Assembly: GCA_965649825.1 (NCBI GenBank)
Contig: OZ287697.1
Coordinates: forward strand, 1,598,351-1,662,350
Direction: 5' to 3'
DNA length: 64,000 nt
Source: Penicillus capitatus
Taxonomy: Eukaryota; Plantae; Chlorophyta
Below the pieces are notes generated by a model that did not search any database, had not been told where the DNA came from, and saw only the letters and a program-made list of their open reading frames with translations. Position 1 is the stretch's first letter. Each line of letters opens with the position of its first letter. The position numbers were made by a program, and so were the translations under genes. Shown here in pieces: positions 1 through 56,171 of this stretch.

Positions 1-2877
1 GGGCAGTGTTGTTGCTGATGTGCATGTCCGTGATGTCGACAGTGCCTGGCCTTGTGGAGAACAGTCCACCTCCGTTGTTGATGGCATTGTTCCCTGCGAG
101 AAGCAGTTGGCTGGCAGTAAGATTGCTCCGAGACAAGTAGATGCCGCCTCCCTCGTTATCAGAATGACTGGCTGTGATACTGACATTTGCCAACACAGCA
201 GATGCATGCTCTGTCAAGCGCAGTCCACCACCATCCTTAGATGCCCAACAGTCCTGGATGGTCGTATTCCGCAGCGTGAGATTTCCACTTCTAATATTGA
301 TGCAGCCACCCACTCGAGCAGTCCCATTCTCTAATGATGAATCACTGATGAGCAGAAGACGGGGTTCTATGGCTTGTATGAATCCGCCAGTCTCACATCG
401 ACTGTTCTTGAAAGTGCATCGACTCAGGTTGAATGTGGAATGCTCAGTATATAGTGCGCCGCCGTTCTGCGTGCTCTGATTATCGATGAAAGTAACATTT
501 ACTAAAGCATCGTCGTCGCTGTGAGTTTCCAGCATGGCGCCACCAGCTCTGGCAGAATTGTTCTTGAAGACAGAGTTGATTACGGTCATGTTCCTCGAAC
601 CGACGGCGTAGAGGCCTCCTGCTGATTGAATGACAGCATTCCCTTCAAAAATCAACTCATCTCCAAAAATCGTTGATCCAAATCCATAGACGCCCCCTCC
701 ATATCCTGCTCGATTTGCTACAAAGCGTGTACGAGTGATGATAGCTGTTCCAAATTGGGCCACTAAGATGCCGCCTCCACTTTGTGCAGCTTGGCACTCT
801 TGAAGGGTCACATTGTGAACAGTGACTGTAGCCATCCCGCAGTTCACGCAAGCGCCTGACCTTGCAGTGCCATTTCTGAAGAGAGAATGTCTGACGTCGA
901 CGTAAGATCCTTCTCTGATCTTTATACATCCGCCACTTTCTGCCCTTCCGTTGGCGAGGATGCACCGTCTGATAGTGGCATTCGACTCGGAGACAAGGAC
1001 GGATCCTCCCTCTAAGGATGCAGAATTCTCGGTGAAGGTGACGTCGACGAAGTCGCCAACGGAATTTGATAAAAGCCAGACTGCTCCTCCTCTCTCGGCC
1101 GAGTTGTTGCGGAAAAGCGAATCTCTGATGGACAGTTCCGACTCCACTGCGTGCACGGCGCTTCCATTGTTGTCTGCCAGATTCAGTCCATCGCCGACGA
1201 TCTGCGTCTCCGTGATGTAGAGTCCCGCTCCTTGTTCTGCCGATCCATTGTCGATGCGGCATCTTCGGATGTCGAGTCTGGATTCTTTGGCATGAACTGC
1301 ACCGCCAGACGTCGATGCGTTGTTCTGGTCGAACTCGCAGTCGGAGAGGTTGGCCGAGAGGGCCAGATCCAGATAGAGAACGCCGCCGACGTCGGCTGCG
1401 TTCTTGCTGAAAGTGGTATCTGCGATGGCGACGTTAGATTCGGAGGCGGCCATCACTCCGCCAGAACTGTTGGCCCTGTTTGAGACGAATCGGCATGACC
1501 GGATGAGGGCAGAGCTAGCCGCTCGAAGACTCAAGGCGCCGCCCTGTCTTGCTTCGTTCCGTCTGAATGTGTCGTTCGCCAAGGTCACATTCGAGCTTGT
1601 TGCTAAGATGGTGGATCCGTTCATGCCAGCATTCTCTTCGAAACGAGTGTCCCGGACGGATGCAGATGCACTCGACAGTCGAATGCATGGAGTGGCAGCG
1701 TCCGCCTCGGACATGTTGACTGTATTCCGGACGAAGGAAGCGTTAGACAGATCCAACGATCCACTCTCGACATGGATGATGGGACACGCGTTCCCCGTTG
1801 CGTCCATGCGCTCGATGAATGTCTCTGACCCGTCTGAACCGTGGAACACTACTGTGCTGGCGTTGGCGGAGTCCGACAGACGGTTCTGCCGAACGCGGAT
1901 GTTCTGCAGCCGGTTCCGACGAGACAGCGTCACACCACAGTGACCGCCGCACTCGTTGTCGGAGAATTCGAAGTCCATCAGTTCCAGTCTGGAGCAGGAA
2001 GGACTCTCCATGGCGAGAGCAGCAGCATCGATCACGGTGTTCCGCTCAAAGCTGACGTGCTGGAGCTGGATGACGCCTTGCGTTCTGCTGGACTGGCACT
2101 CCTCCACCTCGACGATACCTCGAGACCCAGAAGAACCTCTCAGAGAGCAGTTCTCGAATCTGAGATTGGCAAACAGAACACTTCTGGATCTACACAGAAA
2201 CAGAGTGTTAAAATCACCTTCTCGCCAAGGCTGTTAGGCTCACTTGACAAGGAAGGCTCCTTCTCTGTCGCCGGGGCATGTGATAGACGCCTTCCGCGGG
2301 GCTCTCGGGTAGAGACCCTCCACACTCCGAGTTCTGCCCGTCGCCGCGCTGATCGTCACGTTCCACGGGATGGTGACTCTGGTCGCTGGGCGGACGACTT
2401 CACTGACGTCGAAGACGAGCGTATCTCCTTCTGCCGTACAGTTGACGATGACCTGCAGGTCGTTATCAATCGCCTCAAGGATATCGCCGTCGATGCGCCA
2501 AGTACGCGCCGCTGCGTCGAGATACCGACGCATCTCACTTCTGCTCAAGGCGCACGGATACTCTGAGCAAATTCACATACCAAGTCCTCAGTCCATCGTG
2601 GCGCAACTGCTGTCTCGTAGTGCTCACCCGAATCTGAACTATCGGCCTCGTTCTGCAGCAGGCGTTTCCCGAGACTCTGTTTTCCGATAGCGAGTTCGTC
2701 GTCCGGCAGTCGAGACGCCATACGCGAAGAATCCTCGAACCCGTCAATGCCGTTTCCGACCCTCTCCGACACGGGCCGGCTACGGTCCAAACGTATGGTC
2801 ATTTCAGCTGTGGCGCATCGCGAAGGCAGAAATGCCAAGAGGCAGAAAACGGAGAGGAGTCGAAAGAGAGTGTCCAT
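1..2877 (-). CDS. Pmp-like beta-helix repeat surface protein, paralog 1 (3' part runs off the window)
   Basis: ATG at 2877 gives the signal peptide MDTLFRLLSVFCLLAFLPSRCATA. GT-AG introns at 2627-2563 and 2243-2190. Exon 2 (YLDAAARTWRIDGDILEAIDNDLQVIVNCTAEGDTLVFDV) matches the other paralogs. I translated the minus frame from 2189 to base 1 by hand; it is open and full of GGA(I/L/V) and FxxN motifs. It is absent from the ORF track because no stop falls inside the window. Confidence 0.88.
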
Positions 2878-4288: not shown

Positions 4289-7200
4289 ATGGCCCCTAAA
4301 TCCCGCCTGCTTCATTTTGCTCTCTTCATAAACGTCCTTCATCTTCTCCCATCTACGTCTCCGACGACGCCAGGAGAGACGCTGCCCGTAGCGCACAGTC
4401 GAGGATTGCTGACATCCGACGCCGACACCAGCACACGCTCAAAAGAAAGAGGCCGCCAACGCACGACCCTTAAAAGGCAGAGGACTCACAGTCGGCGCGC
4501 ACTGCAGGACGAGATGGACGGTGATGTTGACGGCGGAAGGTCCGAAAAAGGTCAGACCACGCGCAGCACTCGAGACACCAGCCAAACGACTGGCGTTTGT
4601 GTCTCTGTAGAGGCATACACGTGTCACTTGCGAGCAAGGCAGATACAGGCCTTCCTTGACCCTGCAGAGCGTATCTGGCGTGTTGACGAGGCGGTTCTCG
4701 ATGCCATCGACAGCGACCTGCAGTCCCTTGTCAACTGCACACGTGAAGGCGACACACTGCTCTTCGATGTTCGTGGCACCATCAAACCGACGACGCGTGT
4801 CACGATTCCGTGGAGTCTGACGATGAGCGCCGTGACCGACAGCACTCGCCTGGTGGACGGCATCTACCCTCGAGCACCGAAGAAGACATCTTTCACTTGT
4901 CCCGATATCCAGCAAGGCGTTTTTCTTGTCAAGTAGGCAAATCTTATTTGCAGCGACGGGGAATCGAGGCGGGTTGTCTCGTCATTCAGGTCTGGGCGTG
5001 TACTCTTGGCCAATCTTCGTTTCAAAGGATGTCGTTTTGATCGACCTGTCGAGTCCAGGGCTATCGTGAAGGTCGAGGATTGTTCACTGGAGGACGCCAG
5101 AACCATCGTCCAGCTGCATCACGTTAGCTTCGACGGCAATACGCTCATCGGTGCTTCGGGTCTCGATGGCGGCGCGTCGTTTTGCTCGAGGTTGAAATGG
5201 ATCGACGTTACATTCAGACGAAACGTGTGCGACGGCGCCTGCGGTGTGCTGCTGTCCACAGATAACGTTCTGCGCGATGTCCGTGTCCGGGGAGTACTGA
5301 GATCTGACAGGATCGATGCTAGACCTGTGGTCTTCTATGGAGGCAATGTCTCGTACACCGAAGCGAGCGGCAGCAAGGCAATCGCCAACGAAGCGGAGAT
5401 GTTTCGAATCGAAGGTGGAATCCTGGACCTCAGGAAGTCAGAATTCTTAGGCGTCTCTCCGAACGCCGAAACGAAGAATCACTCACACAGTGCTTGCATT
5501 CATCTCACGCGTTCCGAAGCTGTGATCGACGGTTGCCTATTCCAAGGCCATCGAGTAAAAGATGAGGCCACGATCTATGCCGAAGACGGCTCAAACGTGA
5601 CCCTGCGCCGTTCGTCATTGAATGGCATTAAGGCAAAGAAAGGCGGCGCCATCGCTTTGCGGGACACGAGGGCCTTCATCAAGAACGTGTCAGTAATCTC
5701 GTGTTCATCTCAAGAAGACGGCGGAGGCATCTACGCAGTGAACTCCAACATCACAGCGGACGGAATCACACTGCAGGCAAACAGTGCCGACAATGCTGGA
5801 GGTGCCATTTACGTTGAGGGTCAGACCACGCTCGATGTGCGCGATGCCACGTTCGAGAGGAACAAAGCGCGAATCGGAGGGGCGATCTGTGCAAAGGAGA
5901 AGGCGACAGGACGTTTCATCCGTGTGCTCTTTACAGGAAACTCGGCAGAAGAGGTCGGCGGATCGCTGCGCCTATTTGGAGCGAACATGACCTTCACCGA
6001 ATGCACTTTCACAAACGGCAGCGCAGAGGATGGCGGATTCGTTGCCATCCGAGACAACGCCACCGTCACCATCGAACACTCGACACTGACAGACGGTCAG
6101 GCCAGAGCAGACGGTGGATGCCTCCAGGCAAACCAAGGCCACTTCAAGCTCAAGGACGTCACTCTGCAGGAATGCGTTGCCAGGGTCGATGGCGGCGCTA
6201 TGCGACTCGCAAGTGCCTCTGCCGACATCGCCGATTGCACCATGCTGTCTAACTGGGCCAGAGACGATGGTGGATGTCTGTATGCGGAACTCTCAGTGAT
6301 CGCCGGGATTCGATGGACTGCTAACAACAACAGCGCTGGCGATCATGCAGGAGCGCTCTTCGTTCGATTTCAGACGGAGATTTCGGTAAGGGACTCCGTA
6401 TTCCGCAATACGATGGCGGACAACGGCGGAGTGGTTTTTCAAGAACCGGACTCCCTTGCGCATTTCGTGAATGTCTCCTTCGTGAACAGCACCGTTATCA
6501 CCGAGGGCGGAGTGTTCTTTATCCACGGATCGATGACAGTCCTTGACAACTGCGTTTTCGATCACAACAGTGCAGCGACTGGCGGCGTCGTGTATGCACA
6601 TAGGGGTTTCAATCTCACCATCCGCCATTCGGAAATGAGGAACGGCAGAGGAGAACGCAGCGGCTGTCTGCACGCGCTCAATGGACACCTGGACATCCAC
6701 AATTCGACTGTGCGAAGCTGCGGATCTGCTGGAAACGCCGGAGCTATGTATCTGCTTGAAATGGAGGTCCGCATCTCGAACGGCAGTTTCTCGGAGAATT
6801 ATGCGAAGTACGGTGGCGGAGCGATCTTTGCAGAGAAGACAAACTTCACTGGCGAGGCAATGACCGTCGAGAACAACACAGCAGTTATCCTTGGTGGCGG
6901 GTTGTTCTTTATGCAATCCAGATTCCGCCTGACGCATGTGACGTTCAAGGACAACTTTGCTGGCGGCGGCGGAGCCATGCATCAGAGTGAAAGCACTGGA
7001 GCAGTTGTCGATGTGACATCTGTGAACAACGTCTGCTCCGAAAGCGGTGGCACCTTCCACGTCACAAACTCCAGTTTGAACATCCGGCGTTCGGAGTTTC
7101 GCGAAGGGAGAGCGCTTTCGCACGGCGGCTACATTTTGGCGTCTGGAGGAAGCGTGGTTTCCATCGCAGATGTCCAGATGAGTCACGGACAGGCAGCCAG

Positions 7201-10147
7201 AGGAGGAGCCATCTTTGTGACGGCGTCCTCTGTCGAAGCAAGGCATCTCTTTGTCTCTAACTGCACGGCAGCTTCCGACGGCGGCGCCATCAGAGGAACG
7301 GGCGACCTTTCTCTTTTATGCACCGACTGTATCCTCGAAGGCAACGAAGCAAAAGCCAGCGGCGGCGCCTTTTCTTTTGAACCTGACGTCGGCACATGTG
7401 CGGCCATCGAACTCAAGAACAGTACGATCCAACATAACAGCGCTCGATTTGGAGGTAAGATTCGATGCTTCAGTTATGAAGGCTGCAGGTGCTGTGTAGG
7501 AGGACTGCACGTGTCGAGCAGTGATCAAGCGTCACAGCAGGCGCACGACCTCTCCATCTGCGAGATCATCAAGCTGTCGGATTCGATCCTAGCGCACAAC
7601 AGTGCTCAAGTGGCAGGAGGAGCGATATTCACAAGCCGTGCCCAGAACATACGCGTCGATTGCCCGTCGAACAGCGAGGGGATGGCTGCTATGTCTGCGG
7701 AGAATCGAGGGAGATCGAAGGGCAGACTCGACGCGATCGACGATCTCTGTGAGACGTGGCGTAGCAACAGTGCCGGACTGTACGGCCACGACGTTGCGAC
7801 GTTCGTTTCTCGCGTGGTGACAAGTGTGAAGGTCAACGAGATCAACGTCACGGTATCGAACGTGACAGATCCAGGCCGCATCGGACCCTACAGAAGTGGC
7901 AGTCCTCTCTGCATCGCCCTGAAGGCCGTGGATGATTTTGGCCAAGCTCCGGCTGTGGGCACAGACAACCATCCCGTCGTGTCCAAGATCTCATCTCCAG
8001 ATCATCTGTTTGCTGGAAGCAACAGTATCCTTATGGAACCGTACATCCTAGAATTCACTGCGACGGGTCATGCCCGGCCTGGCACATATCATATTGCCTT
8101 CGAATTCAGTGAAGATTCACTGGAGCGTTTCGAAGTCGAGGTGGAGGTACAGCAATGCATGATTGGAGAGGAGCCTTCTGAAGACAGGACGTCCTGCGAG
8201 CCCTGCAGCGCCGCCACTTACAGTTTTGTTCTGGAGGAAGATTCAGAGTGCCTTCCTTGTCCCGAGAACGGAAACTGCACGACTCAAGTTATTCTGCCAC
8301 GAAAGGGATACTGGCACAAGACGCCGTGCTCTACACATCTCCAAGAATGCCTCTCGTCTGAGGCGTGCAGTTTTAAAGAACGAGAGATCCAACTGGCTGC
8401 GGCAACGGAGAACGTCAGCAGCTGCGAATTTAGTGACGCCGATATCCGGAGCTACACAGAAGTTCAGTGCAGAGAGGTAAACAACGAACGCACATCTGGA
8501 TCGCTCCGGCAGTGGATGGTGTTTGCAGGGACACGAGGGACCTCTGTGCGGATCCTGTAAGCCGTCCCACGGGAGATCGCACTCTCAGCTGTGCGAGAAG
8601 TGCTTTGCTGGATCCAGTAACTATGTCTTAGTATTCGTATCGTTTTTTATTCTTCTCATACTTTCGGCGGTGACAGTGAAAAGCAACTCCATCTCTACAC
8701 CGGGAAAGAGCAGAAAATTTTTGGCGTCGGTTTCTGACCAGGAGTCGGCATCGACTGCGTCATCTTTCGTTGTCGTCAATGAACAGATGGTGGAGATGAT
8801 GGTCACGGGTCGTGTGCCGCAAGCGATACTGCATCCAGAACTGCAGTCTGCGCCGCCGGCGGCGACGCCGGAAGATACAGAACTCACAAAATGGAAAGCT
8901 GTGGAGATGTTCAAGGTTCGGATCAACTCCTTTGACCAACACAAAGCGTCTGTTGCAGATACTCGTGAATTTTCTTCAGGTGACGGCGATCGCCGTTGCC
9001 ATCAACGTGAACTGGACACTGATGATGATCGCCCTCTTCGAAGCCGCAGGTATGAGGCATACAGTTCATCAACGTCACTCTTTGGGTCACTCTTCTGTTC
9101 TGCGCAGAGATTATTAGTGGCTTTACCTCGGAGGCGGTGAACCGATCGGTGGACTGCATCGTTCCGGAAGATGCCTCGATGGAACGATCGATTGTCAGCA
9201 TCCTAGTCGACGTCTGCCTTCCGTTCGGCGTCATCTGCGTGTTCAGCCTCTTCTGGTGGGTCGTTAAGATGAAGCGAGGCGAGACATGGTCCTATCTGCT
9301 GAAGAAAAGCATCCTGACCACCATCGCCGTTCTGCACATCAGCTACATCTCGCTCAGCAAGACGCTCGTCAGTGTTCTGCACTGTGTGGAAGTTCACGAT
9401 TCTGTCGATGTGGAGATCGACGTCACATCAAGCTACTGGGTCATGGACACCAAGATCCGCTGCTATGAAGGATCCCATACCTTCTTGGCTTTACTATTGG
9501 GATGGCCTTTTCTGATCATCTTCACTTTTGGATTCCCTGCAGCGACCGCCTTCCTCACCATCCGAAACGTCGAGGAGGAGTACAAGGATGGCTGGATCTA
9601 CGAGACATGCGGTTTCCTCTATCGATCCTACCGGAAGGAGTACGTCTTCTGGGAATCGGTCATTATGTTCCGGAAGGCGATTCTGGTAGCGATCGTCATT
9701 TTTTCGAGCCCACTGGGCTCCGACCTGCAGCAAGTGCTCGCCGTGCTTCTTTTCACTTTCGCTCTCTACCTCCAAATGATGTGCTGTCCCTACCGTTCCG
9801 AGTTTGACAGCCTGAATCGAATGGAGAGCGCATCCATTCTTGTTTCTGCAATGACTTTCGGCTCGAGTATGTTCTTCAACAACGAACACGTATCCTCTGC
9901 TGTTCGCATTATCCTCACTGTCAGTCTTGTATTGTGTAATATCACTCTTTTTGTGTTTTTTCTTATTGTTTTTGCGATTCTTGCTGCTAATTATTTGAGA
10001 ACGATTCTCGATCGGGAGGGAGTATTGTACGACCGAGAAGGTCGTGCCCATCACATTCTGATGGTCTATTGCTTACATTACCTCTGTGGACGTGGAACGG
10101 ACACCATTCTCAGTCTGTTTTGCACGGCTCCAGCGAGCATTACTTGA
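4289..10147 (+). CDS. Pmp-like beta-helix, Cys-rich (TNFR/ephrin-receptor-like) and multi-pass membrane protein, paralog 2 (intact)
   Basis: ATG 4289 with signal peptide. Introns 4551-4610, 4933-4989, 7455-7499, 8477-8528, 8916-8958, 9050-9107 join ORFs 3995-4936, 5006-8560, 8523-9140, 8812-9117 and 9137-10147 in frame. GGAI/FxxN repeats; CEPC...CLPCPENGNC...GYWH...GPLCGSC Cys-rich block; about 8-9 hydrophobic helices including FLYRSYRKEYVFWESVIMFRK. Confidence 0.92.
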
Positions 10148-13768: not shown

Positions 13769-14694
13769 CCATGGGGTACAATCTGGCGAGGAAGAACCAG
13801 ATTTCGGATACCAAGGCACTATCGGTACCGTTTGCTTCGGTGGCTCCGTGGTGCTGAGAGGATGGATGGCTTGCGGCCATTATTTGTAGATGGGTAATTC
13901 TGCATCATTAGCTAATCACAGAAATCATTGCGCAGCGTGCAGAGGTCAAAAAAAGAGTGTCCAATTCGATGATGTCGTGAGACAACGTTAAGCAGCTGAA
14001 GATTCTGAAGCTCATCCAGAAGCAATGACAGCAGAAATCGTCGACGGCGAAAACCGTTTGACCAAGTCCATGTCACAGTGAATGTGCAGAAGAAGGCCAA
14101 TCGCTTCTGGGCATGGCTTATACATCTCGGAGGAGAACACTGTGATAGTCGCAATCAGATACAGTCTACCAGATTCCACAAGTCTCTTCTGGCGTCGGAA
14201 GCCACCGCTGGTCCTTAACCCCATAAGATTTACACTTTGAGACGGCAATGGCTATTGCTGCAGTAGTGTTCAAGGCCTGTCAGGACGTGAATTCTGTCGC
14301 TGAATACCGCTTATACTCATCTGGCTTCATCAACATCTCCGGCGTGCCAGTGTCATGATCACGACAGGAATCTGTTCTCCCGTCAGATGTTGGCAGGCTT
14401 TTGTTCTGAACACAATGTCTATGACCAGAGGAGAAACATTTCACATCCCACACACCCACACTGTCGCAGCATCATCCAGATAACTCACTAACTACTCAGC
14501 AGTATTGAAGTTGTCGTACAAAAAGAAGATACATCGAATCAGTCGCGATCAACTGATTTACGTCACCGATGGGAACCTCCGCTTCATTTTCTCCATCACG
14601 AACTTTGGTGCGAACTTGTGCGACGGTAGGCAAGTTCGCGCGTTACGCTGCGCTGCAAGTGACGAGATTTTGCTGTGCAGATTACAGCTACGAC

Positions 14695-20600: not shown

Positions 20601-20675
20601 TATGTCGGGTTTCTAAGACAAGAGTTTGACGAGAAGTTTCCCGGATTACTAGATCATCTTGAAACAAAAGAGTAG
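14695..20675 (+). CDS. NLR-like protein: N-terminal helical domain, NACHT NTPase and 21 HEAT repeats; +1 frameshift in an A8 run as given
   Basis: Walker A GNAGSGKT (16560-16583), Walker B LLVFDGLDEA, NACHT motif FPHFTFQEYFAG. 37-aa HEAT repeats of type GCxD..W.VR.AA..AIG. Phase-0 intron 16205-16259. ORFs 14569-16086, 16031-16333 and 16269-20675 become colinear with the paralog at 24276-29364 if one A is removed from 16065-16072. Confidence 0.9.
18120..20400 (+). repeat. Array of 21 HEAT repeats (111-bp period) in NACHT-HEAT gene 1
   Basis: Counted 21 C.D....VR motifs at ~37-aa spacing. The segment starting 18129 is nearly identical to the one starting 18684 (offset 555 = 5 x 111). Confidence 0.88.
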
Positions 20676-43400: not shown

Positions 43401-46400
43401 ATGTCTCTGGCCTTGAACTTGGATCGCGAGGATATGGAAACAGCACCACCATCGTATGCCGTAGCAGAGATTACTGAGCTTCTTGCCATAACGACATTAC
43501 TGAGAAATCCTATGTCAACGAAACCACCGTGCTCAAGAGCAGACATGTTAGATGCTTTTGTCTGGTGAATGGAGATGTCTGCACGAGTATATCCATATAT
43601 CCCTCCACCACGGTTTGCATATCCGCCGGTGAAGCGACACTTCTGCACGTTCAGCACAGAACCTTCGACGTAAGCAGCTCCTCCAGTTGTGCGTGCAGAG
43701 TTCTTGTTGAATCTGCAGTTAACGACTCTCCCTGAGGAGTTCTGGGCCAGATAGATGGCTCCTCCGACGCTTGCTGCGTTGCTGGAGTAGTTCGATTTTT
43801 TGTCAACCAATGTGCAGTTTCCGAAACAATGGATGACACCCCCGTCGACGGTAGCCATATTATCCGCAAATGAGCATTCACGAATAAGCATCTCTGCGTT
43901 TTGGCCAAAGATAAATCCGCCGTCCTCATTCGCAGACAAGCTGGATGTGATGGTCTCATTGACAGATATCTTCGAAAATACTGCATAGATTCCACCACCA
44001 TAATCGGCGGATCCATTGTCAAGCTGACACTTCCGCATGGAGAATGTGGAGTTTTCGAGACGAACAAAACCGCCAGAAGTGGACGCATTGTTTCTTGCTG
44101 CAGTGGTCTTCGTGATAAAGACGTTCGAAAGATACGCATAGATTCCACCACCACCATCAGCGGATCCTTCAGTAAAACGGCACTTCCGTATGGAGAAATC
44201 GGAGTTCTTGAGAAAAACAGCGCCGCCAGATGTGGACGCATTGTTTCTGGATGCGGTAGTCTCGATGACAGAGACGTTTGAGAAAATCGCGTAGATTCCT
44301 CCACCGTATTCTGCGGATCCATCGACAAGGCGACTCTGCTGCATGGAGAAGTTGGAGTCTTTGAGACGAACAAAACCGCCAGATGTGGATGCAATATTCC
44401 TTGATGCGGTGCTCTCCATGACAGACACGTTTGAGGAAATCGCGTAGATTGCTCCACCCTCTTCCGCGGTTCCATTGACAAGCCGACACTTCCGCACCGA
44501 GAAATCGGAGTCCTTGAGAAAAACAGCGCCGCCAGATTGAGATGCATTGTTTTTCGATACGGTGGTCTTCATAACAGACACATTTGATGAAATCGCGTAG
44601 ATCGCTCCGCCGTCTTTCGCGGATCCATTGACAAGACGACACTTCTGCATGAAGAAATCGGAATCCTTGAGTCGAACAAAGCCGCCAGATTTGGACGCAT
44701 GGTTTTTCGACACGGTTGTCTCGGTGACAGATATCTTCGAAGAAACTGCATAGATTCCGCCGCCATGCCGTGCGGATCCGTTGACAAGTCGACTCTTCCT
44801 AACAGACAGCGCAGAGTCTTCGAGATACACAAAACCGCCAGATGTGGACGCATTGCTCTTGTCAAACACGCAGTCAATGATTCTCCCTGTGGAGTTCGCC
44901 TCGAGATTAAGAACTGCACCAAAGTCTGCTGCGTTTCCAGTGCAGTTCGATCTTTTGAGGTCCAAACTGCAATTGGAATCGCACGAAAGCACGCCGCCTG
45001 AGCCGCCAGCCACGTTGTTTAAGAAGGAACAATCATCGATGAGAATCTCTGAAGTCCCGCCAGCAATGAATCCACCTGTCTCATTGACAGACAGTCCAGA
45101 TGCAGTGGTCTTCGTGACAGATACGTTTGAAGATAACACACTGATTCCTCCACCGACAGATGCAGATCCGTTGGCAAAACGGCACTTCCGAACAGAGAGC
45201 ACGGAGTCTTCGATGTGAGTCACCCCGCCAGAAACGGACGCATTGTTTCTGTCAAAGGTGCATTCAGCGATACTCCCCGAAGAGTTTTGCCGTAGATAGA
45301 CTGATCCACCCATAGATGCTGTGTTACGCGAGTAATTTGAGCGCATGTCCGAATAAGTGCAATTGGGATGGCAATGAACGACACCCCCTTCGCTGCCAGC
45401 CACGTTGTCGATGTACAAGCCGTCACTGAGGCTTAATTCCGTCGTTTCGCCGAAAATGTATCCACCGTGATCCCTCGCATTGTTTCGTGCTGCAGTGCTC
45501 TTCATAACAGAGACGCTCGAATGGTGTGCACAGATTCCTCCACCGTTGTCTGCGGATCCTCCAGTAAAGCGGCACTTCTGGACGGAGAGCGTGGAATTTC
45601 GAACAAAAACACAGCCGCCAGATATGGATGCCTTGTTCCTTGCTGCAGTGGTCTCGATAACGGAGACATTCGAATGATACGCACAGATCCCTCCGCCGTA
45701 TTCTGTGGATCCATTCATGAAGCGACACTTCTGAACGGAGAGTAGGGAGTGCTCGACATAAACACCGCCGCCAGATGCGGATGCATTGTTCCTTGCAACA
45801 GTGCTCTCCACGACCGAGACGTTTGAGTAAGATGCATAGATTCCTCCACCAAATTGTGCGAATCCATTCATGAAGCGGCACTTCTGTATGGAGAGCGTGG
45901 AATTCCGAACAAACACACAGCCGCCAGATGCGGATGCCCCGTTCCTTGCAGCAATGGTCTTCTTGACAGACACTGTCGAAGAAACCGCGTAGACAGCGCC
46001 ACCGTCGTCTGCGGATCCACTGACAAGCCGACACTTCTGCATGGAGAAGTGCGAGTCTTCGAGACGAACGAAACCGCCGCCGAAGCGGTTGGCTCTGTTT
46101 TCCTTCATCGTGGAATCTTCGACGATCACTCGAGAGTGAGAAGCGAGCAGCACTCCACCCGATTCATCCGCGATGTTGTACGAGAAGTTGCAGGACTGGA
46201 TAAGAGCCAAACTCGAAGCCCGCAGAACCATAGCGCCTCCTTGTGTTGCTGCGTTCCCCTCGAATGAAGTGTTCGTCAACGTCACATTCGACGTTGATGT
46301 GACAATGGCACTTCCGACCCTTGCCATGTTTCCTTCGAAGCGGCTTCCCCGGATCAAAGCAGATGCATTCGAAAGTCGAATGCACGGATTGACAGTCTTT

Positions 46401-47571
46401 ATCGCCGAACTGTTCAACAGATTTTGAGTGAAGCTAGCATTCGATAAACTCAGTGAACCTCCTTTGATGTGCAGGAGTGAGCATTCGTTCTCTTCGGCGT
46501 CCATGTATTCAACAGAGGTCTGAGATCCAGACGAGGCATAGAACACCGCTGTACTCCTGTTAGCGGAGCCTGAGAACCGGACCCGTCGAACACGGACGTC
46601 CTGCAGTCTGCTCTGCTTTGGGAGTAGCACGCCACAATAGCCGCTGCAATCGTTGCTCTCGAAGTCAAACTCCACCAGCTCGAGCACCGAACAGGAGGAT
46701 CTCGGCATGGAGATCCCGGCCGCTTCGATAAGGACGTTTCGCTTGAAGCTTATGCGGTGCAGCTGAACGACGCCTTCTGTTCTCCTGGACCGGCAGTTCT
46801 CGACATGAATGATGGCCTTGGATCCAGCAGAACTTCGCAGAGAGCACCTCTCGAAGTTGAGGTTGTCGAAAAGGACACTTTCAGATCTGCACAGAAGAAC
46901 ATTCAGAAATCCATTCCACTGCGAACCGTTGTGCTCACCTCACGAGAAAAACGCCTTCGTCTTTTCCAGGACATGCGATAGACGCCTTCCGAGTTCTCTG
47001 ATTGGGAGCGTCCAAGTGTCGAGTTCTGCCCGTCGCTGAGGTGATTGTCAGATTCCACGGAACAGTGACACGAGCACGAGGCCGAACGACGTCGCTAACG
47101 TCGAAAAGCAGAGTGTCTCCCTCCGCCGTACAATTGACAATGACTTGCAAGTCACTGTCAATCGCTTCGAGGACATCATCGTCGATGCGCCAAGTACGTG
47201 TCTCGGCGTCGATGTAGTCCTGCACTTGGCTTCTCCCCAAAGAGCATTCGTCAACTAAACAGACACAGCAAGACACAGGTCAGCGTCTTTGGCAGAAGCG
47301 GCGCTCAGAGTGACATACCTCCGCCACGGTTTGTCTCTTCTGCGCTATCGTCTGTCTGGGACAGCTGTCGTGTCTGTCCGACCCGTGCCTCATACATCGT
47401 GGCGAATTGCACTCGGACTTGGTGTTGGCGGCCGCTTAGAATTGCTTCGCTTTCAGCTTCCGGCGCGGACTTCGTCGCCTCCACTGGCATCGCCGACTGC
47501 TCGGCGTTGACACATGGGAGGAGAAGATAGTTAACGCTGACGAACAATAACAAGAAGAACGCAGATGTCAT
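40474..47571 (-). CDS. Pmp-like beta-helix / Cys-rich / multi-pass membrane protein, paralog 4 (intact, expanded repeat region)
   Basis: Signal peptide MTSAFFLLLFVSVNYLLLPCVNA (an upstream ATG at 47607 is also possible). Introns 47318-47255, 46938-46887, 43200-43153, 42164-42111, 41723-41672, 41580-41529 join all ORFs in frame. Same domain order as paralog 2. Confidence 0.9.
43651..46045 (-). repeat. Higher-order coding tandem repeat: (153 bp)x4 - 237 bp - (153)x1 - 237 - (153)x6 - 237
   Basis: The 51-aa unit (S..KCR...GSA..GGGIYA..S.VSV..T.A.RNNAS.SGG.V....S..) recurs at exact 153-nt steps (block starts 46045, 45196, 44806). Each block is followed by a homologous 79-aa spacer of exactly 237 nt. 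Confidence 0.88.
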
Positions 47572-48222
47572 GAGATATGAAACAATTCGAGTCTTTCGCA
47601 TCATCATCGTCTGGCCGTTTCCTATTATACCGTGAACGGTTACTAGCGGTAAACGCATCGCCCGTCGTTGCTATGCTCACCGCTTTACATCCGATGACAC
47701 TTTTCCACGCCTATTGTTTTCGCCTGTTAGAAATCCCTAGTGGTTTGACAGCTAGATACTTTGGCCTTGACGCTGAGGCAGTGGATGCTTTTGGTCCTGT
47801 CTGCCGCTTTTGTCGTCGTTTTCTGTCGACGATTGGTGACGGTCGTCTCACAGTGTGAAGTTTTCGTGAATGACTTTGAATAGGACGGACACTTCGACGA
47901 CAAATCGTCTCGTTTAACTCCCACATACTCACCTGTCGGGTTCACTTTTCGTCCGAACGGCTGCCGCCTCCAACCAAGTGTGTTCGGAACAGGGCTGGAT
48001 CTGCGGTTGTTTTGTATGCACCGTTTCGCCTGCGGTGCTTGACGGATATGTTGCACTCTACACATGACAAGATGCAGTCGTCACTCACCCACTCGTCTTG
48101 TCAGCCAGGCCGCGTCGCGATACGCAGTTTCCTCGTTGACATGGCTGTCCAAACTAGGCACGCTGCCAAGTCCTTTCACGAATGCTACTTCGGTAAGAGG
48201 ACAAAAGTGTGAGAATGCCTAC

Positions 48223-49640: not shown

Positions 49641-51173
49641 GTTTTCTTTTGTGCCTGATGCCGTATCATTGGCTCGGCAATTCGACTCTGGATCCAAGAG
49701 ATTGGTTATCTGGGAATGGTCGACAGCCAGGTTCGTCGTCGATTCCCAAATTGCAGGTGTCTTCTGATTTGTCAAGTTCGCAGATCAATCGGTCGACATT
49801 CCAACAGTGTAACTATGCCCATTCACTGTTCATGCAACGTTCGGAATAGGAAGGACTCCTGTATGAGGCATTGTCCAACAGGTAAAAATAACGGTAAACG
49901 ATGTCGCCCTGTGGTGTATCTCGAGTCTTTCAGGAGATGACCGACCATTTGTCGTGACGCACCGACTAGGATGGAGAGAACTGCCTGAAACACCAACGGT
50001 GCTGCGGAGGTAGTACATTCCACGGGGCCCGCCTCTTCTGCGAGGTTCGAGTACTGCAACCGATCTCGAGGGCTTGTGACGACTTCCCGTCGGACACCTT
50101 CAAATTCCTCCATTAAACAGATTATTCCGAAGCTATATCTGACTCATCGGCAGAACTCCGTACTTCATTTCTGAAGTTTACTCGTCGACGTATTCCGCGC
50201 ACACAAAGTCTGCCAACGAATTCGACAAGGTAAAGTCGGATTCCTTTCTCCGAACAGCCGAACCGATTTCCGTTTGCAGAACGACACCACGAGCAACGAC
50301 GCATCACAGTACGCTGAAAACATGGACGACGGTTCTCACTCTGCTGCCAAACCTCTAAAACAACCAGTCGGAAAGGCAAACCACAATGTCCTGATAAAGA
50401 TGGTAAGCATGCATATTGGACTCGTCCACATGTGTTGTTACGGCGACCGTTTCTCCAGCCTGAGCATCTGACGGTTGCCGAAGAATCCGCGTGCTTCGAA
50501 GACTGTCTGAAGACGCCAGTCGGAAGCCAAGCGTGGGTACCATGCCAAACGGGAACGCCGCATACGACCGCCGTGGCCGACGCCGCGCGATACACTGACC
50601 AGCCTCAACGGGCAGAGGTGCGTGATAACCGTAAGCGATTACGAGCTCTGAATTGTGCATTTTCGCTCAGGTGGTTCAACGTGCAGGCGGCAATTCGGGT
50701 CTCAGATTCAACGTCTATCGAGCCCCAAAGGTGACTGATTCACCCTGTGCTGCGCACTTTTATCGCAACAGCGTGTTAACAGATGTGGGATGCTGTGAGC
50801 GTTGTCAATAAGTTTCCGTCGCACACCTCTCGTCTTCGCTGCCATGGAAAGGGTTCTTCTGTTCTCTTCTCCAAAGAACTCGTTCCCAAATCAGCTCCAC
50901 GTATCAGAACACGTGCGCCAAGAAGCACGACTACTAATAATCCTTTCTCAGTCAACTTGATTCGACCACCTATACATCAAGCAGAACGGATTCGCCCTCA
51001 GACTTCAGTTCTCACGAACGCTGAGGTACTCTGCCCTTTCTTCTGTTCGTAGTTATAAAGAACTCTTTGCTCAGGGAAATTCCGAGAAAATCTGCGAGCT
51101 CGAAGTCAAAGGACATGGCCTCGTGCAGATCTTTCGCGTGGGACAAGATTACGGAGGGAAGATTGTAGAACAC

Positions 51174-54100
51174 ATGGGGCCGTTCTCAAGGAGTAAGACG
51201 GTTCCATTGTGTTGCAAGGGTTTCACCGATCCAGAACAAGCAACGCGAGGCCTGGCCCACTTGCCGCAGAGTGCTCTTCGTCATCACGTTCACGTCCTTT
51301 CTGGTCATAACAGAGGCGTCGAAAAGTTCATCTACGTGGGAAATCTCGGCCTTCTGGGCGGCGGCGACAGAGCACCTCCGTCCAGCAGTGATGCGCTCGG
51401 ACACCAGACTGCCGAAAGCAATGCTTTTCACTCGGCGGCGCAAAGGGATTTGATTGAATCGGAGAGATCACTCATCCGAAAGTTTTTTGGCAAAAAATCG
51501 AATCAAAGTATCGAAAAAGTCGTGAAGGCGTTCAACGAAACGGACGACGATGCGCAGAAAACCGGTCTGGCGAAAGTGCTTCGGAAGATTATCTGCGTCT
51601 TTAACGAAATGCCCGTCAGAGACATAATCGACAACCGAGGAGCCATAATCCATGAGTATCTGGCCGTATGCACACTCCACAGCGTCGGCGAAGAACACTT
51701 GTCTCTCCACAAGGACCTCTTCGACGGGATTTGCAACAAGCTGTACTCCAGCGCTCTCAACGACAGACACGTGATGGAGGCTGTAGAGCACACCCTTCAG
51801 ATCGTCGACACGGAGGTCTTCGAGGAGGATCCGAGCTGTCTCGTTAATCTCGCCGAGTTCCTATTCGACGCGTTTGATCCGGACGGCGTGAGCTTTTCGA
51901 AAGAAATGTTTGCCTTACAGTGCAGCGCTATGTACGCTCTTCTCGAGTGTTTAAGAATCCTCCACGACGTCCACTTGGGCAATTGGAATCCAGAGAAGCT
52001 TGAGTGGCTCTACGCCAAGTTCGAGGACTGGAGTCAGAGGGCGATCGACCTTAGAAGACACTACTACTATCCATTAAAATTCCAAGCGACGCTGGCGGTG
52101 CAGGGTTTGAACCTTTTGCGGTCCTGTAGGCGAGCCGTCCGCAAGGCGAACAACGCAAGGCTCGTCGCCAATCTTGCGCACTGCGCGGAGGGAAAAAATC
52201 AAGCGGTGCGAGGGGCAGTCCATCTCGACTTCGACCTCGGAAAAGCAGGGTCCGTGACGAGAGCGCTGCTACAAGCGTTCCTACAGGCGAGGCACAGCAA
52301 AATCGTCTGCGAAGATCAATGGTGCACGTGCCTTCATGCCATGAGTAGTGCGTGTTTTGCGGCCATGGACGATCTATTAGCCTTTGAAGTATTCAGCGAG
52401 CTTCTCTCCTTTCTTGCGCTCAACGCAGAGAGTACCGACGACGAAAGCCGCAAGGCTCTGAGGTTCGGTGTTGCGAAGATGTTGAGCAATCTCGCTGTCT
52501 ATGGAAAGGATGGAGTCGTTCGCGGAGCGAGCATCGAGACCCTCGCAAGCCTCGTCGAACGAATAGACAAGTGGGACTGGTTGAGCGATCCCGATCTCTT
52601 CATAGAGTTGCTCGACAACCTTTCGGAGCTTAGCGTTCGAGGCTACGAGGACGAGAAGCGTGAAGCACGCAAAGCTTTACGAAAATTGGCATTGAACGTG
52701 CACACCGAGGCATGCGAAGAAGCGCTGTCCAAGTGGCGGGGAGGAAAAACGGTCGAGGAACGAATCGAGTCGCTCTCCTCCGATCGATCGCACACGTCGA
52801 GCAACGTGCTGTTTTCGCAAGTTTGGAAAAGTGTCAAAAAAGAACTGACGCCGGCGAAGACTGGAGATCCTTCTCATACGAAGAAGAACCGTTTTTTGAC
52901 CTCTCCTTACATCACTCGTCACTTTGCCGGGAGGAAGGAAGAATTTAGCGAGCTCATGGATGCTTTCACGTCGACTGGCGAATCGGTCTTTTTCAAGGCA
53001 ATTGTAGGCCCGGGCGGAATAGGAAAGACTCAGCTCGCGATAAAGGTATTCGACCAGCTAAAAAGCAAGGGCAAATACGACCACACCTTCTGGATCCCTT
53101 CGGATTCGAGGGAAAGTCTATCCACCGCCTTCTTCCAGATGGCAGAATACCTGAATATGTTCGCGGTCGACGACATCCCGGAGCTTGTCAAAAGCGTTTA
53201 CGAAGAACTCGGAAGATCACGCATTCTCTACGTCTTCGATGACGCCATTGATCTCAACATGATTTGCGAGTACCTCCCGCCGGCAGTTGGACACGTCATT
53301 GTCACGACGAGAGACGTCGAAGCGAAGGGCTGGGAGAGCGACACGATGCAGCTCGGGCCATTCGACGATTGCGAAGCGTGGTTTCTGGCACAGAAATTTG
53401 GATATACCCTGTCGCCGCATTCGGAGGGTTTGAACGAATTGCTCGATTTTCTGCCTCTTTATCCGCTCACCCTGTCTCAGTTTTTCTCGATGATGAATTA
53501 CGAGAACGTGCCAAGCCCCGCAGAATGGATAGAAAAGGCGGGACGATATTCACCTTCAAGAAGCGAAGCTAGGGCAATAGAAATGCTCTCCAGAGAGCAC
53601 GACCTAAGAGGAGCCAGTGCGATGGTCTTCTTGTTTCGATCTAGCGTGCTGAGCATTTCGAGAGAACCCGGCGACATTGGAACGCACTCTCTCGATATAC
53701 TCACCAAGCTGGCGTTGCTCGACCCAAATGGAGTCCCCATCGCATGGGTGTACAAATGGTACGAACACGAGGATCAACAATCCGAAACCAAAACGCAAAA
53801 ATCAATAAGACTGCTTGAGCGTTTCTCCTATGTCTCGTGGAACATAGAGAATAAGCAGATCTACATTCACGCCGAGACGCAGCTTCTAGCAAGACACCTC
53901 CTCTTACACGTCGACGAAAGAAGCCCCGGCCAAAAGGAAGAGCGTGGAGAGCATGCGGAAGAGAAATCCAGAGCTCACATCAACACCATTGTGCATTCAA
54001 TCGATCAATACGTCGGAGATTGGAGAACGGATGTCTCGAACCGAGAACTGTGGACCTCGCTTGCTCGAAATGGGGTTTCACTCCTCAGAAATTGCGGAAG

Positions 54101-56171
54101 AGACCAAGATATCGGCGTAGAGTTGAAGCTATTAGAACACATGGCAAAAGCTTACTCCGAGATGTGCATGTTTCGTGAGGCGCTTACGTACTATCAAAAA
54201 GCACTCGAGATGTGCGAGCGCCTGCACGCCGGAGCGGACCATCCGGACCTCGTCGATTGCATCAGAGAATACGCCGTCGGACTCTCGAAGAACGGAAGGG
54301 ACAACGAAGCTATGCCGTTCCGCTTGAGGGCCCTCGAGATGTGCGAGCGCCTGCACGCCGGAGCGGACCATCCGGACCTCGTCGATTGCATCATAGAATA
54401 CGCCGTCGGACTCTCGAAGAACGGAAGGGACAACGAAGCTATGCCGTTTCTCTTGAGAGCACTCGAGATGTGCGAGCGCCTGCACGCCGGAGCGGACCAT
54501 CCGGACCTGGTCGATTGCATCAGAGAATACGCCGTCGGACTCTCGAAGAACGGAAGGGACAACGAAGCTATGCCGTTCCGCTTGAGGGCCCTCGAGATGT
54601 GCGAGCGCCTGCACGCCGGAGCGGACAATCCGGACCTCGTCCAGTGCATCAGAGAATACGCCGTCGGACTCTCGAAGAACGGAAGGGACAACGAAGCTAT
54701 GCCGTTTCTCTTGAGGGCACTCGAGATGTGCGAGCGCCTGCACGCCGGAGCGGACCATCCGGACCTCGTCGATTGCATCATGAACTACGCCGTCGGACTC
54801 TCGAAGAACGGAAGGGACAACGAAGCTATGCCGTTCCGCTTGAGGGCCCTCGAGATGTGCGAGCGCCTGCACGCCGGAGCGGACCATCCGGACCTCGTCG
54901 ATTGCATCAGAGAATACGCCGTCGGACTCTCGAAGAACGGAAGGGACAACGAAGCTATGCCGTTCGACTTGAGGGCCCTCGAGATGTGCGAGCGCCTGCA
55001 CGCCGGAGCGGACCATCCGGACCTCGTCGATTGCATCAGGAACTACGCCGTCGGACTCTCGAAGAACGGAAGGGACAGCGAAGCTATGCCGTTTCTCTTG
55101 AGGGCACTCGAGATGTGCGAGCGCCTGCACGCCGGAGCGGACCATCCGGACCTCGTCGATTGCATCATGAACTACGCCGTCGGACTCTCGAAGAACGGAA
55201 GGGACAGCGAAGCTATGCCGTTCCGCTTGAGGGCCCTCGAGATGTGCGAGCGCCTGCACGCCGGAGCGGACCATCCGGACCTCGTCCAGTGCATCAGAGA
55301 ATACGCCGTCGGACTCTCGAAGAACGGAAGGGACAACGAAGCTATGCCGTTCCGCTTGAGGGCCCTCGAGATGTGCGAGCGCCTGCACGCCGGAGCGGAC
55401 CATCCGGACCTCGTCCAGTGCATCAGAGAATACGCCGTCGGACTCTCGAAGAACGGAAGGGACAGCGAAGCTATGCCGTTCCGCTTGAGGGCCCTCGAGA
55501 TGTGCGAGCGCCTGCACGCCGGAGCGGACCATCCGGACCTCGTCCAGTGCATCAGAGAATACGCCGTCGGACTCTCGAAGAACGGAAGGGACAACGAAGC
55601 TATGCCGTTCGACTTGAGGGCCCTCGAGATGTGCGAGCGCCTACACGCCGGAGCGGACCATCCGGACCTCGTCGATTGCATCAGGAACTACGCCGTCGGA
55701 CTCTCGAAGAACGGAAGGGACAGCGAAGCTATGCCGTTCCGCTTGAGGGCCCTCGAGATGTGCGAGCGCCTGCACGCCGGAGCGGACCATCCGGACCTCG
55801 TCCAGTGCATCAGGAACTACGCCGTCGGACTCTCGAAGAACGGAAGGGACAGCGAAGCTATGCCGTTCGACTTGAGGGCACTCGAGATGTGCGAGCGCCT
55901 GCACGCCGGAGCGGACCATCCGGACCTCGTGGATTGCATCAGAGAATACGCTGTCGGACTCTTAAAGACGGGAAGGGACAACGAAGCTATGCCGTTCCTC
56001 TTGAGGGCCCTCGAGATGTGCGAGCGCCTGCACGCCGGAGCGGACCATCCGGACCTCGTGGATTGCATCAGAGAATACGCTGTCGGACTCTTAAGGACGG
56101 GAAGGGACAACGAGGCGGTTGCTTTTTTTCAAAAAGCGGAAGAATTACGTGAGCGGCTTGAGTACCGTTAA
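51174..56171 (+). CDS. NLR-like protein: N-terminal helical domain, NB-ARC NTPase and 15 highly conserved TPR repeats
   Basis: 1682-codon ORF; first in-frame ATG at 51174, true start uncertain. FAGRKEEF, Walker A GPGGIGKT (53007-53030), ILYVFDDA, GHVIVTTR. 43-aa kinesin-light-chain-type TPR repeats. Confidence 0.92.
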   Translation: MGPFSRSKTVPLCCKGFTDPEQATRGLAHLPQSALRHHVHVLSGHNRGVEKFIYVGNLGLLGGGDRAPPSSSDALGHQTAESNAFHSAAQRDLIESERSLIRKFFGKKSNQSIEKVVKAFNETDDDAQKTGLAKVLRKIICVFNEMPVRDIIDNRGAIIHEYLAVCTLHSVGEEHLSLHKDLFDGICNKLYSSALNDRHVMEAVEHTLQIVDTEVFEEDPSCLVNLAEFLFDAFDPDGVSFSKEMFALQCSAMYALLECLRILHDVHLGNWNPEKLEWLYAKFEDWSQRAIDLRRHYYYPLKFQATLAVQGLNLLRSCRRAVRKANNARLVANLAHCAEGKNQAVRGAVHLDFDLGKAGSVTRALLQAFLQARHSKIVCEDQWCTCLHAMSSACFAAMDDLLAFEVFSELLSFLALNAESTDDESRKALRFGVAKMLSNLAVYGKDGVVRGASIETLASLVERIDKWDWLSDPDLFIELLDNLSELSVRGYEDEKREARKALRKLALNVHTEACEEALSKWRGGKTVEERIESLSSDRSHTSSNVLFSQVWKSVKKELTPAKTGDPSHTKKNRFLTSPYITRHFAGRKEEFSELMDAFTSTGESVFFKAIVGPGGIGKTQLAIKVFDQLKSKGKYDHTFWIPSDSRESLSTAFFQMAEYLNMFAVDDIPELVKSVYEELGRSRILYVFDDAIDLNMICEYLPPAVGHVIVTTRDVEAKGWESDTMQLGPFDDCEAWFLAQKFGYTLSPHSEGLNELLDFLPLYPLTLSQFFSMMNYENVPSPAEWIEKAGRYSPSRSEARAIEMLSREHDLRGASAMVFLFRSSVLSISREPGDIGTHSLDILTKLALLDPNGVPIAWVYKWYEHEDQQSETKTQKSIRLLERFSYVSWNIENKQIYIHAETQLLARHLLLHVDERSPGQKEERGEHAEEKSRAHINTIVHSIDQYVGDWRTDVSNRELWTSLARNGVSLLRNCGRDQDIGVELKLLEHMAKAYSEMCMFREALTYYQKALEMCERLHAGADHPDLVDCIREYAVGLSKNGRDNEAMPFRLRALEMCERLHAGADHPDLVDCIIEYAVGLSKNGRDNEAMPFLLRALEMCERLHAGADHPDLVDCIREYAVGLSKNGRDNEAMPFRLRALEMCERLHAGADNPDLVQCIREYAVGLSKNGRDNEAMPFLLRALEMCERLHAGADHPDLVDCIMNYAVGLSKNGRDNEAMPFRLRALEMCERLHAGADHPDLVDCIREYAVGLSKNGRDNEAMPFDLRALEMCERLHAGADHPDLVDCIRNYAVGLSKNGRDSEAMPFLLRALEMCERLHAGADHPDLVDCIMNYAVGLSKNGRDSEAMPFRLRALEMCERLHAGADHPDLVQCIREYAVGLSKNGRDNEAMPFRLRALEMCERLHAGADHPDLVQCIREYAVGLSKNGRDSEAMPFRLRALEMCERLHAGADHPDLVQCIREYAVGLSKNGRDNEAMPFDLRALEMCERLHAGADHPDLVDCIRNYAVGLSKNGRDSEAMPFRLRALEMCERLHAGADHPDLVQCIRNYAVGLSKNGRDSEAMPFDLRALEMCERLHAGADHPDLVDCIREYAVGLLKTGRDNEAMPFLLRALEMCERLHAGADHPDLVDCIREYAVGLLRTGRDNEAVAFFQKAEELRERLEYR
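54201..56113 (+). repeat. 15 near-identical 129-bp TPR-coding repeats
   Basis: The anchor ctcgagatgtgcgagcg occurs at 54204, 54333 and so on to 56010; 1806/129 = 14 steps, giving 15 copies. Confidence 0.96.

Follow-up and report, generated by a model that had tools for sequence, protein, structure and literature searches.

Genes of the cluster

The present study concerns a 64,000-nucleotide stretch of contig OZ287697.1 (positions 1,598,351 to 1,662,350; hereafter the window), in which genes for Pmp-type membrane proteins are interleaved with genes for NLR-like STAND NTPases. A tblastn search of the window's own proteins against the window, together with Pfam, gave the gene order PmpA(-)/PmpB(+), NACHT-HEAT A(+)/NACHT-HEAT B(-), PmpC(-)/PmpD(-), and NB-ARC-TPR(+). 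PmpA and PmpB form a divergent pair and the NACHT-HEAT genes a convergent one, and PmpC and PmpD are arranged in tandem. This layout agrees in orientations, order, and domain types with a first-pass annotation made from the sequence alone. The interleaving of two families described there was also reproduced; however, the genes belong to three families, and the two STAND families have an N-terminal domain in common. The right end of the proposed cluster (1-56171) is set by a housekeeping flank, whereas its left end is only the edge of the window. PmpA becomes complete 3.3 kb beyond this edge, and a fifth Pmp gene, convergent with PmpA, is located further out (locus L012). Therefore, position 1 is not a true boundary of the cluster, which contains at least five Pmp and three NLR-like genes, eight in total, in approximately 62 kb. 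Genes account for approximately 39 of the 56 kb of the cluster in the window.

In NACHT-HEAT A (14569-20675, + strand), the N-terminal domain is an alpha-solenoid (14569-16086). Next come the NACHT domain, whose Walker A motif is at 16560-16583, and the HEAT array, and the C-terminal tail is conserved. NACHT-HEAT B (24276-29364, - strand) has the same build, with the N-terminal domain at 27859-29364 and the Walker A motif at 27483-27506, and appears intact. The two genes are 40-43% identical, each has an upstream exon of approximately 500 aa, and a 55-nt intron, the only one in NACHT-HEAT B, is conserved between them. Pfam scored NACHT at 53.9 and 46.8 bits and HEAT at 212 and 141 bits in 16269-20675(+) and 24276-27821(-), respectively. 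NACHT-HEAT A contains a one-base frame break in a run of eight A residues (16065-16072), and dropping one A restores homology to its relatives. The break is either a genuine mutation or a long-read homopolymer error at 13x coverage. NB-ARC-TPR (51174-56171, + strand) comprises an N-terminal alpha-solenoid domain (51174-52890), an NB-ARC domain with its Walker A motif at 53007-53030, and TPR repeats; the scores in 51123-56171(+) were 42.8 bits for NB-ARC, 202 bits for TPR_10, and 178 bits for TPR_12. All NACHT and NB-ARC scores were above the Pfam cut-offs. The TPR array (54201-56116, + strand) consists of 15 near-identical units of 43 aa, which Tandem Repeats Finder recorded as 14.8 copies of 129 bp at 94%. 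In the translations, the Walker A motifs read GNAGSGKT, GNPGSGKT, and GPGGIGKT, and Walker A and B are intact.

The NLR-like genes have a tripartite build: an NTPase module and C-terminal repeats, both recognized by Pfam, and a conserved N-terminal domain as the putative effector part. This domain of approximately 480 aa is common to NACHT-HEAT and NB-ARC-TPR proteins: the N-terminal regions of the two types align colinearly at 22% identity (E=9e-10), many cross-matches between family members fall at 1e-8 to 1e-14, and the region was kept at all five other NACHT-HEAT loci examined. It had no match in Pfam and no sequence match in the PDB. An AlphaFold model built from 15 sequences (predicted local distance difference test [pLDDT] 77, predicted template-modeling score [pTM] 0.76) showed an all-alpha solenoid, and the neighbors of the model in structure searches were generic ARM, HEAT, and importin repeats with template-modeling (TM) scores of 0.2-0.3. 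The presence of one N-terminal domain on two types of NOD (the domain of nucleotide binding and oligomerization) represents domain assortment of the type described for fungal NLRs (PMC4986451). This domain, unmatched in the libraries searched, is a concrete candidate for a new signaling module.

Hydropathy analyses did not reveal a signal peptide or convincing membrane segments in the NLR-like proteins. Pfam found no LRR, TIR, or RPW8 domain in them, which places them outside the TNL, CNL, and RNL classes of plant NLRs. A relationship to prokaryotic anti-phage STAND systems was rejected because PADLOC gave no meaningful match to an anti-phage defense model. The nearest named relatives of the NACHT part were fungal NACHT proteins with approximately 24% identity; the family searches returned no close named algal homologue of either NLR-like family, and named matches were distant at that level. 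Two short conserved segments were also observed. A C-terminal tail of approximately 90 aa (20400-20675 and 24276-24560; ...FVLHTTSSQK...FPGLLxH...) follows the HEAT array, has no Pfam match, and is kept at other loci. The start of the NB-ARC-TPR family (51174-51230; relatives P0244-P0254) has the conserved sequence MGxF(S/T)(R/K)xxTVPLxC. We speculate that Gly-2 and the nearby Cys are lipidation sites that would tether the protein to a membrane.

Among the Pmp genes, PmpB (4289-10147, + strand) encodes a signal peptide (MAPKSRLLHFALF...), a beta-helix of PMP repeats, and a Cys-rich region ahead of a multi-pass membrane domain. The gene appears intact, and its introns are at positions common to the paralogues. 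PmpD (40474-47607, - strand) is the largest copy (approximately 2,300 aa), with an uninterrupted repeat exon of 1,172 aa, a repeat periodicity of 153 bp, and introns of 48-64 nt at conserved positions. It also appears intact, and the same open reading frame (ORF) is present on a second contig with 12x coverage. The Chlam_PMP domain (PF02415; cut-off 20.6 bits) scored 58.9 bits in the PmpB ORF 5006-8560 and 29.5 bits in the PmpD ORF 43190-46708. PmpA (1-2877, - strand) is represented in the window by the 5' two-fifths of the gene, with a signal-peptide exon near 2877 and a tblastn match to PmpB at 2173-98. PmpC (32679-39553, - strand) is homologous to PmpB and PmpD and corresponds to the pseudogene that the first-pass annotation reported. 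A three-frame reading of its junctions revealed an in-frame TAA at 37299-37301 within a PMP repeat (F*DCNARRNGGAM) and a frameshift near 35911-35933, also inside the repeat region, where the repeat periodicity leaves no space for an intron. Exon junctions were read by hand; automatic GT-AG intron models were approximate, with some junctions wrong, and are no proof of intactness by themselves.

At its start, each Pmp gene encodes a hydrophobic signal peptide, and a conserved N-terminal segment comes after it; 1,000-1,500 aa with 25-44 GGx-hydrophobic motifs and 26-51 N-glycosylation sequons per protein follow, and then the Cys-rich region. By hydropathy, the C-terminal part consists of one hydrophobic helix, a loop of approximately 170 aa, and another six to eight helices; 7-8 hydrophobic segments were counted in the proteins, and the helix count is 7-9. 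A small extra exon that separates the cytoplasmic loop from the main exon of the membrane domain (PmpB 8960-9060, PmpD 41570-41660, PmpC 33830-33900) encodes a conserved hydrophobic helix (..QVTAIAVA..W....ALF..AG). Therefore, the membrane part holds more helices than the largest exon suggests. Judged from these sequences, the Pmp proteins appear to be anchored in the membrane and to expose a large N-terminal region. The earlier description of surface beta-helix receptors agrees with the predicted anchor, signal peptide, and exposed region; however, Pfam found no receptor-type ectodomain (LRR, LysM, or lectin) and no kinase in these proteins. The C-terminal 900 aa had no Pfam match even at E<=5, including to GPCR domains, and an AlphaFold model of the membrane domain from three sequences (pLDDT 47) was too poor for fold comparison. 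Neither the Pmp middle domain nor a barrel of the autotransporter kind was found by Pfam, and hydrophobic helices are present instead; the proteins are therefore not autotransporters of the chlamydial type.

A profile of the Pmp membrane domain matched 4,795 cluster representatives at E<=1e-3, 1,281 at E<=1e-10, and 173 at E<=1e-30. The long, properly modeled matches were Caulerpa and Bryopsis proteins (E=1e-105 to 1e-43). Chlam_PMP or Beta_helix domains occur in these proteins too, and their alignments with PmpB, PmpC, and PmpD span almost the entire length at 23-32% identity, with up to 1,984 columns. A scan of JGI metagenomes with the same domain matched one contig of 2.1 kb. By homology, the Pmp genes belong to an old, large, unnamed, and uncharacterized eukaryotic family found across Bryopsidales. 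Since three Caulerpa members have nearby gene numbers (g3776, g3781, and g3785), the family appears to be clustered there.

Expansion and rapid birth-and-death of the three families

By an exact match of the 409-aa EcKL kinase encoded at 61584-62813, the window contig corresponds to ctg340394 (576,620 bp) of the ENA metagenome assembly ERZ25074695, with a coverage of 13x. Its genes contain short GT-AG introns (46-64 nt) that break long reading frames; spliced genes and eukaryotic neighbors rule against a bacterial origin. The nearest named relatives of a flanking ABC1/EYE3-type kinase were from Trebouxia (48% identity), Volvox (45%), and Chlamydomonas (57% over part of the protein), and those of the Pmp genes were from Caulerpa lentillifera and Bryopsis sp. 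KO-2023. A RETICULATA-like gene of a plastid family and ABC1 kinases are also nearby on the contig. The alga-like lineage of the earlier annotation is supported by the flanking kinase, the RETICULATA-like gene, and the Pmp homologues. Since the nearest named relatives of the kinase and the Pmp genes are green algae, the organism is a chlorophyte, probably of ulvophyte or Bryopsidales-like affinity.

Two contigs served for comparisons of the locus. A 12x contig from the same sample, which is 99.0-99.7% identical to window positions 41218-64000, is a second haplotype or strain. A 4.08-Mb contig with 180x coverage from sample ERZ26696514 represents a close relative (ABC1 kinase 93% identical) and is syntenic with the window from PmpD through the housekeeping flank. 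The arrangement in the window may be questioned as an error of assembly or binning on a metagenome contig of low coverage; the frameshift in the A8 run is at a typical site of long-read error, and ten or so TPR units that are inverted on the 12x contig may be mis-assembled. However, the 12x contig independently reproduces 41218-64000, the 180x contig of the relative retains the order from PmpD to the flank, and the window's own contig continues leftward in the same fashion. We consider an artefact extremely improbable. Contigs of related algae with these families had coverages of 344x, 39x, and 13x/12x in ERZ25074695 and 180x, 147x, and 66x in ERZ26696514, and an aminotransferase from a common 90%-identity cluster links the 344x contig (6.9 Mb) to the 180x relative. 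The distinct coverages suggest a mixture of populations from related algae or else unequal ploidy or copy number.

Both NLR-like families are expanded in related assemblies, as anticipated. For the NACHT part of NACHT-HEAT, the number of relatives at E<1e-100 was at least 55, with identities of 44-66%. All were on ENA contigs; a 1.6-Mb contig carries six of them, a 334-kb contig three, and the 4.08-Mb contig two. The N-terminal part of NB-ARC-TPR had at least 21 close relatives, likewise confined to ENA contigs of this kind. Within the cluster, amino acid identities between paralogues are just 27-50% by tblastn. We therefore rejected recent tandem duplication; by sequence divergence, the paralogues are old rather than recent copies. 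The 5' exons of PmpA, PmpC, and PmpD, which encode the signal peptide and the conserved N-terminal segment, in contrast, show 76-83% DNA identity (38914-39520 vs 46935-47538 and 2240-2524) against approximately 30% amino acid identity elsewhere, which suggests gene conversion or strong constraint on that module.

Synteny with the close relative is kept in the flank, in which proteins are 92-95% identical in amino acid sequence, whereas the orthologues of PmpD and NB-ARC-TPR are truncated or broken. In the PmpD orthologue, the 5' exons are joined straight to the last ~175 aa of the repeats, ~1,000 aa of repeats are gone, and the membrane domain contains four in-frame stops. The NB-ARC orthologue has lost residues ~109-578, which correspond to the N-terminal domain, and ends early. 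Between the two algae, the ratio of nonsynonymous to synonymous substitutions (dN/dS; Nei-Gojobori) was 0.06-0.10 for the flanking EcKL kinase, ammonium transporter, and EAP30, but 0.28 for the NB-ARC module and 0.33-0.36 for parts of PmpD. The cluster ratios indicate relaxed constraint and do not demonstrate positive selection.

The repeat arrays are also polymorphic. The TPR units are approximately 94% identical, and their variation is concentrated at positions 19, 22, 23, 35, and 41. On the 12x contig, approximately ten TPR units are inverted (L006 13385-14678), and the NB-ARC-TPR frame is 1,145 aa compared with 1,682 aa in the window; the inversion is either a structural allele or a mis-assembly. 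The HEAT array of NACHT-HEAT A contains a duplicated block of two units (236 nt, 92% identity). Birth-and-death evolution, which the first-pass annotation had taken from plants and fungi, is supported here by the broken orthologues in the relative, the relaxed constraint, and the polymorphic arrays, and the TPR array, the duplicated HEAT block, and a 25-bp minisatellite attest to the repeat turnover that it noted. These results show that all three families are expanded and undergo fast birth-and-death evolution in comparison with the slow housekeeping flank.

STAND NTPases have many non-immune roles. The STAND genes of the window may encode NTPases that serve some other function in the cell, as regulators or scaffolds particular to the lineage, in which case the NLR-like build would be a matter of architecture only. 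The generic alpha-solenoid at the N terminus, which lacks a known effector fold and a Pfam or PDB sequence match, and the absence of a meaningful match to anti-phage models are in line with such a role. However, family expansion, near-identical repeats with few variable sites, structural polymorphism, decay in the relative, and relaxed constraint typically mark recognition families and are unusual in core regulators. We regard a non-receptor role as unlikely, and the reading of these genes as algal NLR-like genes appears reasonable from their sequences.

Co-residence of Pmp and NLR-like genes

We favor, with a probability of approximately 0.55, the explanation that the region consists of at least five old Pmp paralogues in which three genes for cytosolic NLR-like STAND NTPases are embedded, and that duplication-prone families share a plastic chromosome segment. 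The NLR-like proteins would act as ligand-gated switches: a ligand would bind to the HEAT array or to the near-identical TPR units, the NACHT or NB-ARC module would then exchange nucleotide and oligomerize, and oligomerization would bring the N-terminal alpha-solenoid domains together to produce a signal. The Pmp proteins would serve in adhesion or recognition by exposing a glycosylated beta-helix on the surface of the cell. The co-residence of both kinds may be attributed to a plastic stretch with duplication-prone families more readily than to a single functional unit.

The first-pass annotation proposed that the locus is a two-tier system of non-self recognition at the surface and in the cytosol. 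Expanded and fast-evolving families of NLR-like and membrane proteins do lie side by side; however, neither a general co-clustering nor a known effector domain was found. Co-clustering was assessed in 20-26 kb around six further NLR-like genes, which represent five independent loci. At four of these five (L002, L008, and L009 with NACHT-HEAT genes and L011 with an NB-ARC-TPR gene), the NLR-like gene is single, amid housekeeping genes or beside a retrotransposon, and no Pmp homologue was present within 10 kb. Only at the fifth locus, represented by L003 and L010 in two related algae (85-89% DNA identity), was a Pmp neighbor found: L010 has a Pmp gene 5 kb downstream and L003 has a Pmp membrane-domain fragment at its upstream edge. 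Co-clustering is thus not a general rule among the loci sampled. Two other neighbors of NACHT-HEAT genes were recorded. In one related alga, a long terminal repeat (LTR) retrotransposon with RVT_1, integrase, and gag-aspartyl protease is directly downstream of the gene (L008 13530-18777), and on the 6.9-Mb contig, a 965-aa ORF with ankyrin repeats is directly downstream (L002 13841-16738).

A functional two-tier unit, in which surface Pmp and cytosolic NLR-like proteins are co-inherited and co-regulated for defense or self/non-self discrimination in a possibly coenocytic alga, has several arguments in its favor. Five Pmp and three NLR-like genes are interleaved in ~62 kb, the adjacency of PmpD and NB-ARC-TPR is kept in one related alga, a second locus with a NACHT-HEAT gene has a Pmp neighbor in two related algae, both kinds of gene evolve fast, and the restriction of repeat variation to few sites is as in fungal allorecognition NLRs (PMC4986451). 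However, four of the five other independent loci have no Pmp gene within 10 kb. The Pmp family also occurs across Bryopsidales and is apparently clustered in Caulerpa, for which the family-wide homologue searches gave no relatives of either NLR-like family. No kinase, TIR, death-fold, or other known signaling link was found, and both syntenic genes decay together in the relative, which does not suggest a maintained unit. We consider such a unit quite unlikely, and the sequence argues weakly for the hypothesis of a linked two-tier recognition locus.

A few observations weigh against the preferred explanation of a shared plastic segment. The density of eight such genes in ~62 kb is striking. At L003/L010, a Pmp gene is within 10 kb in both algae, on different sides, and a weak real association is therefore possible; the frequency of one in five independent loci is a raw count. 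In addition, part of the raised dN/dS of the cluster is due to pseudogene decay in the relative, and the N-terminal domain, in which Pfam, PDB, and structure searches found no known effector fold, has no recognizable function. A more far-reaching speculation, more doubtful still than the two-tier unit, concerns an ulvophyte that may be a siphonous giant of a single cell. Such an alga would have evolved a separate NLR-like repertoire based on an undescribed alpha-solenoid domain, and part of this repertoire would be linked to polymorphic surface beta-helix proteins. Together, the two would form a surface-plus-cytosol recognition supergene for defense or self/non-self discrimination, analogous to fungal heterokaryon incompatibility.

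According to Dyrka et al. 2014 (PMC4986451), TPR, ANK, WD, or HEAT repeats are combined with NACHT or NB-ARC in fungal NLRs. The genes in the window resemble them in the tripartite build without LRRs, the pairing of NB-ARC with TPR, one N-terminal domain on either type of NOD, near-identical repeat units with few variable positions, and birth-and-death. They differ in the ~480-aa alpha-solenoid, which is unrelated to fungal domains such as HET, HeLo, PNP_UDP, and patatin, in the green algal host, and in an identity of only ~24% to the nearest named fungal NACHT proteins. In the brown alga Ectocarpus, NB-ARC-TPR genes were proposed to encode fast-evolving pathogen receptors (Zambounis et al. 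2012; PMC3341825), and they likewise have NB-ARC ahead of a series of similar TPR units. Each TPR unit in Ectocarpus is reportedly a separate, shuffled exon, whereas the 15-unit array in the window is one uninterrupted exon that changes by the gain, loss, and inversion of units. NLR-like genes in which NB-ARC or NACHT is combined with repeat domains have also been reported in the green algae Chromochloris and Scenedesmaceae, according to PMC13315243, which cites Feng et al. 2024. Those surveys sought LRR, TPR, WD40, or ANK repeats and N termini of the TIR, CC, or RPW8 type, whereas the families here have another N-terminal domain. NLR-like genes as such were therefore already on record in some chlorophytes (PMC13315243) and in brown algae (PMC3341825). 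New here are the unclassified N-terminal domain common to two NLR-like families and the placement of the "Pmp" genes in a large family of membrane proteins of Bryopsidales.

Pmp-like proteins reported in trichomonads are surface proteins. Together with chlamydial Pmps, which are autotransporter adhesins, they share with the Pmp proteins of the window the PMP repeats of the GGA(I/L/V)/FxxN type and large, variable paralogue families. The PMP repeats of chlamydial Pmps form a beta-helix (PMC10715098, PMC11166332), and a transcriptome study of Tritrichomonas contains the Chlam_PMP Pfam accession (PMC9203502). Unlike the chlamydial proteins, those of the window have no middle domain or barrel; their signal peptide is of eukaryotic type, and a Cys-rich stalk precedes the C-terminal multi-pass membrane domain. 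The nearest named counterparts are the uncharacterized Pmp-type proteins of Caulerpa lentillifera and Bryopsis sp. KO-2023 (for example, EukProt g3968.t1 and GMH38983.1), which are colinear over their full length, share the PMP beta-helix and the C-terminal membrane domain, and are not known to have NLR-like neighbors. The two-tier immunity of plants, with pattern recognition receptors (PRRs) and NLRs, is comparable in the concept of a membrane-exposed repeat receptor and a cytosolic STAND receptor. However, the Pmp proteins have no LRR or LysM ectodomain or kinase, the NOD proteins have no TIR, CC, or RPW8 domain and no LRR, and a functional coupling of the two tiers is hypothetical here.

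Innate immunity and self-recognition are almost undescribed in green seaweeds and their kin. One such lineage now shows expanded NLR-like families in which repeat units are near-identical and vary at few sites, domains are re-assorted, and gains and losses are rapid; these are signatures of fungal NLRs and were proposed for the candidate receptors of brown algae. Pmp-type proteins are candidate cell-surface proteins of this lineage. If the linkage of the two kinds of gene is non-random, the locus would be the first physically linked surface and cytosolic recognition system outside land plants. If it is random, the locus would still be a useful marker of a fast-evolving genome compartment.

Spacers and right flank

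The DNA between the genes was described as degenerate in the first-pass annotation, but the spacers are ordinary non-coding DNA. Spacer ORFs did not exceed 204 aa, none had a Pfam match, and homology searches of the spacers recovered no relic of either family; the presence of gene relics was therefore rejected. Rfam and tRNA scans of the window found nothing. In the spacer between the convergent NACHT-HEAT genes, Tandem Repeats Finder identified a perfect minisatellite (22866-23256) with a unit of 25 bp (CTTCTAATCATCGGGGAGGGAGGGA) in 15.6 copies with 100% matches.

Housekeeping-like genes resume to the right of the cluster from ~57 kb, as had been noted. By Pfam, the conserved flank (59950-63876) contains an ammonium transporter (- strand), an EcKL-type kinase (61584-62813, + strand, 409 aa), and Vps36/EAP30 (- strand). 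Two ORFs at the edge of the cluster, 56473-57285 and 57946-58467, have no Pfam match. They are probably real genes, and their aligned parts show 74% and 83% amino acid identity, respectively, in the related alga.

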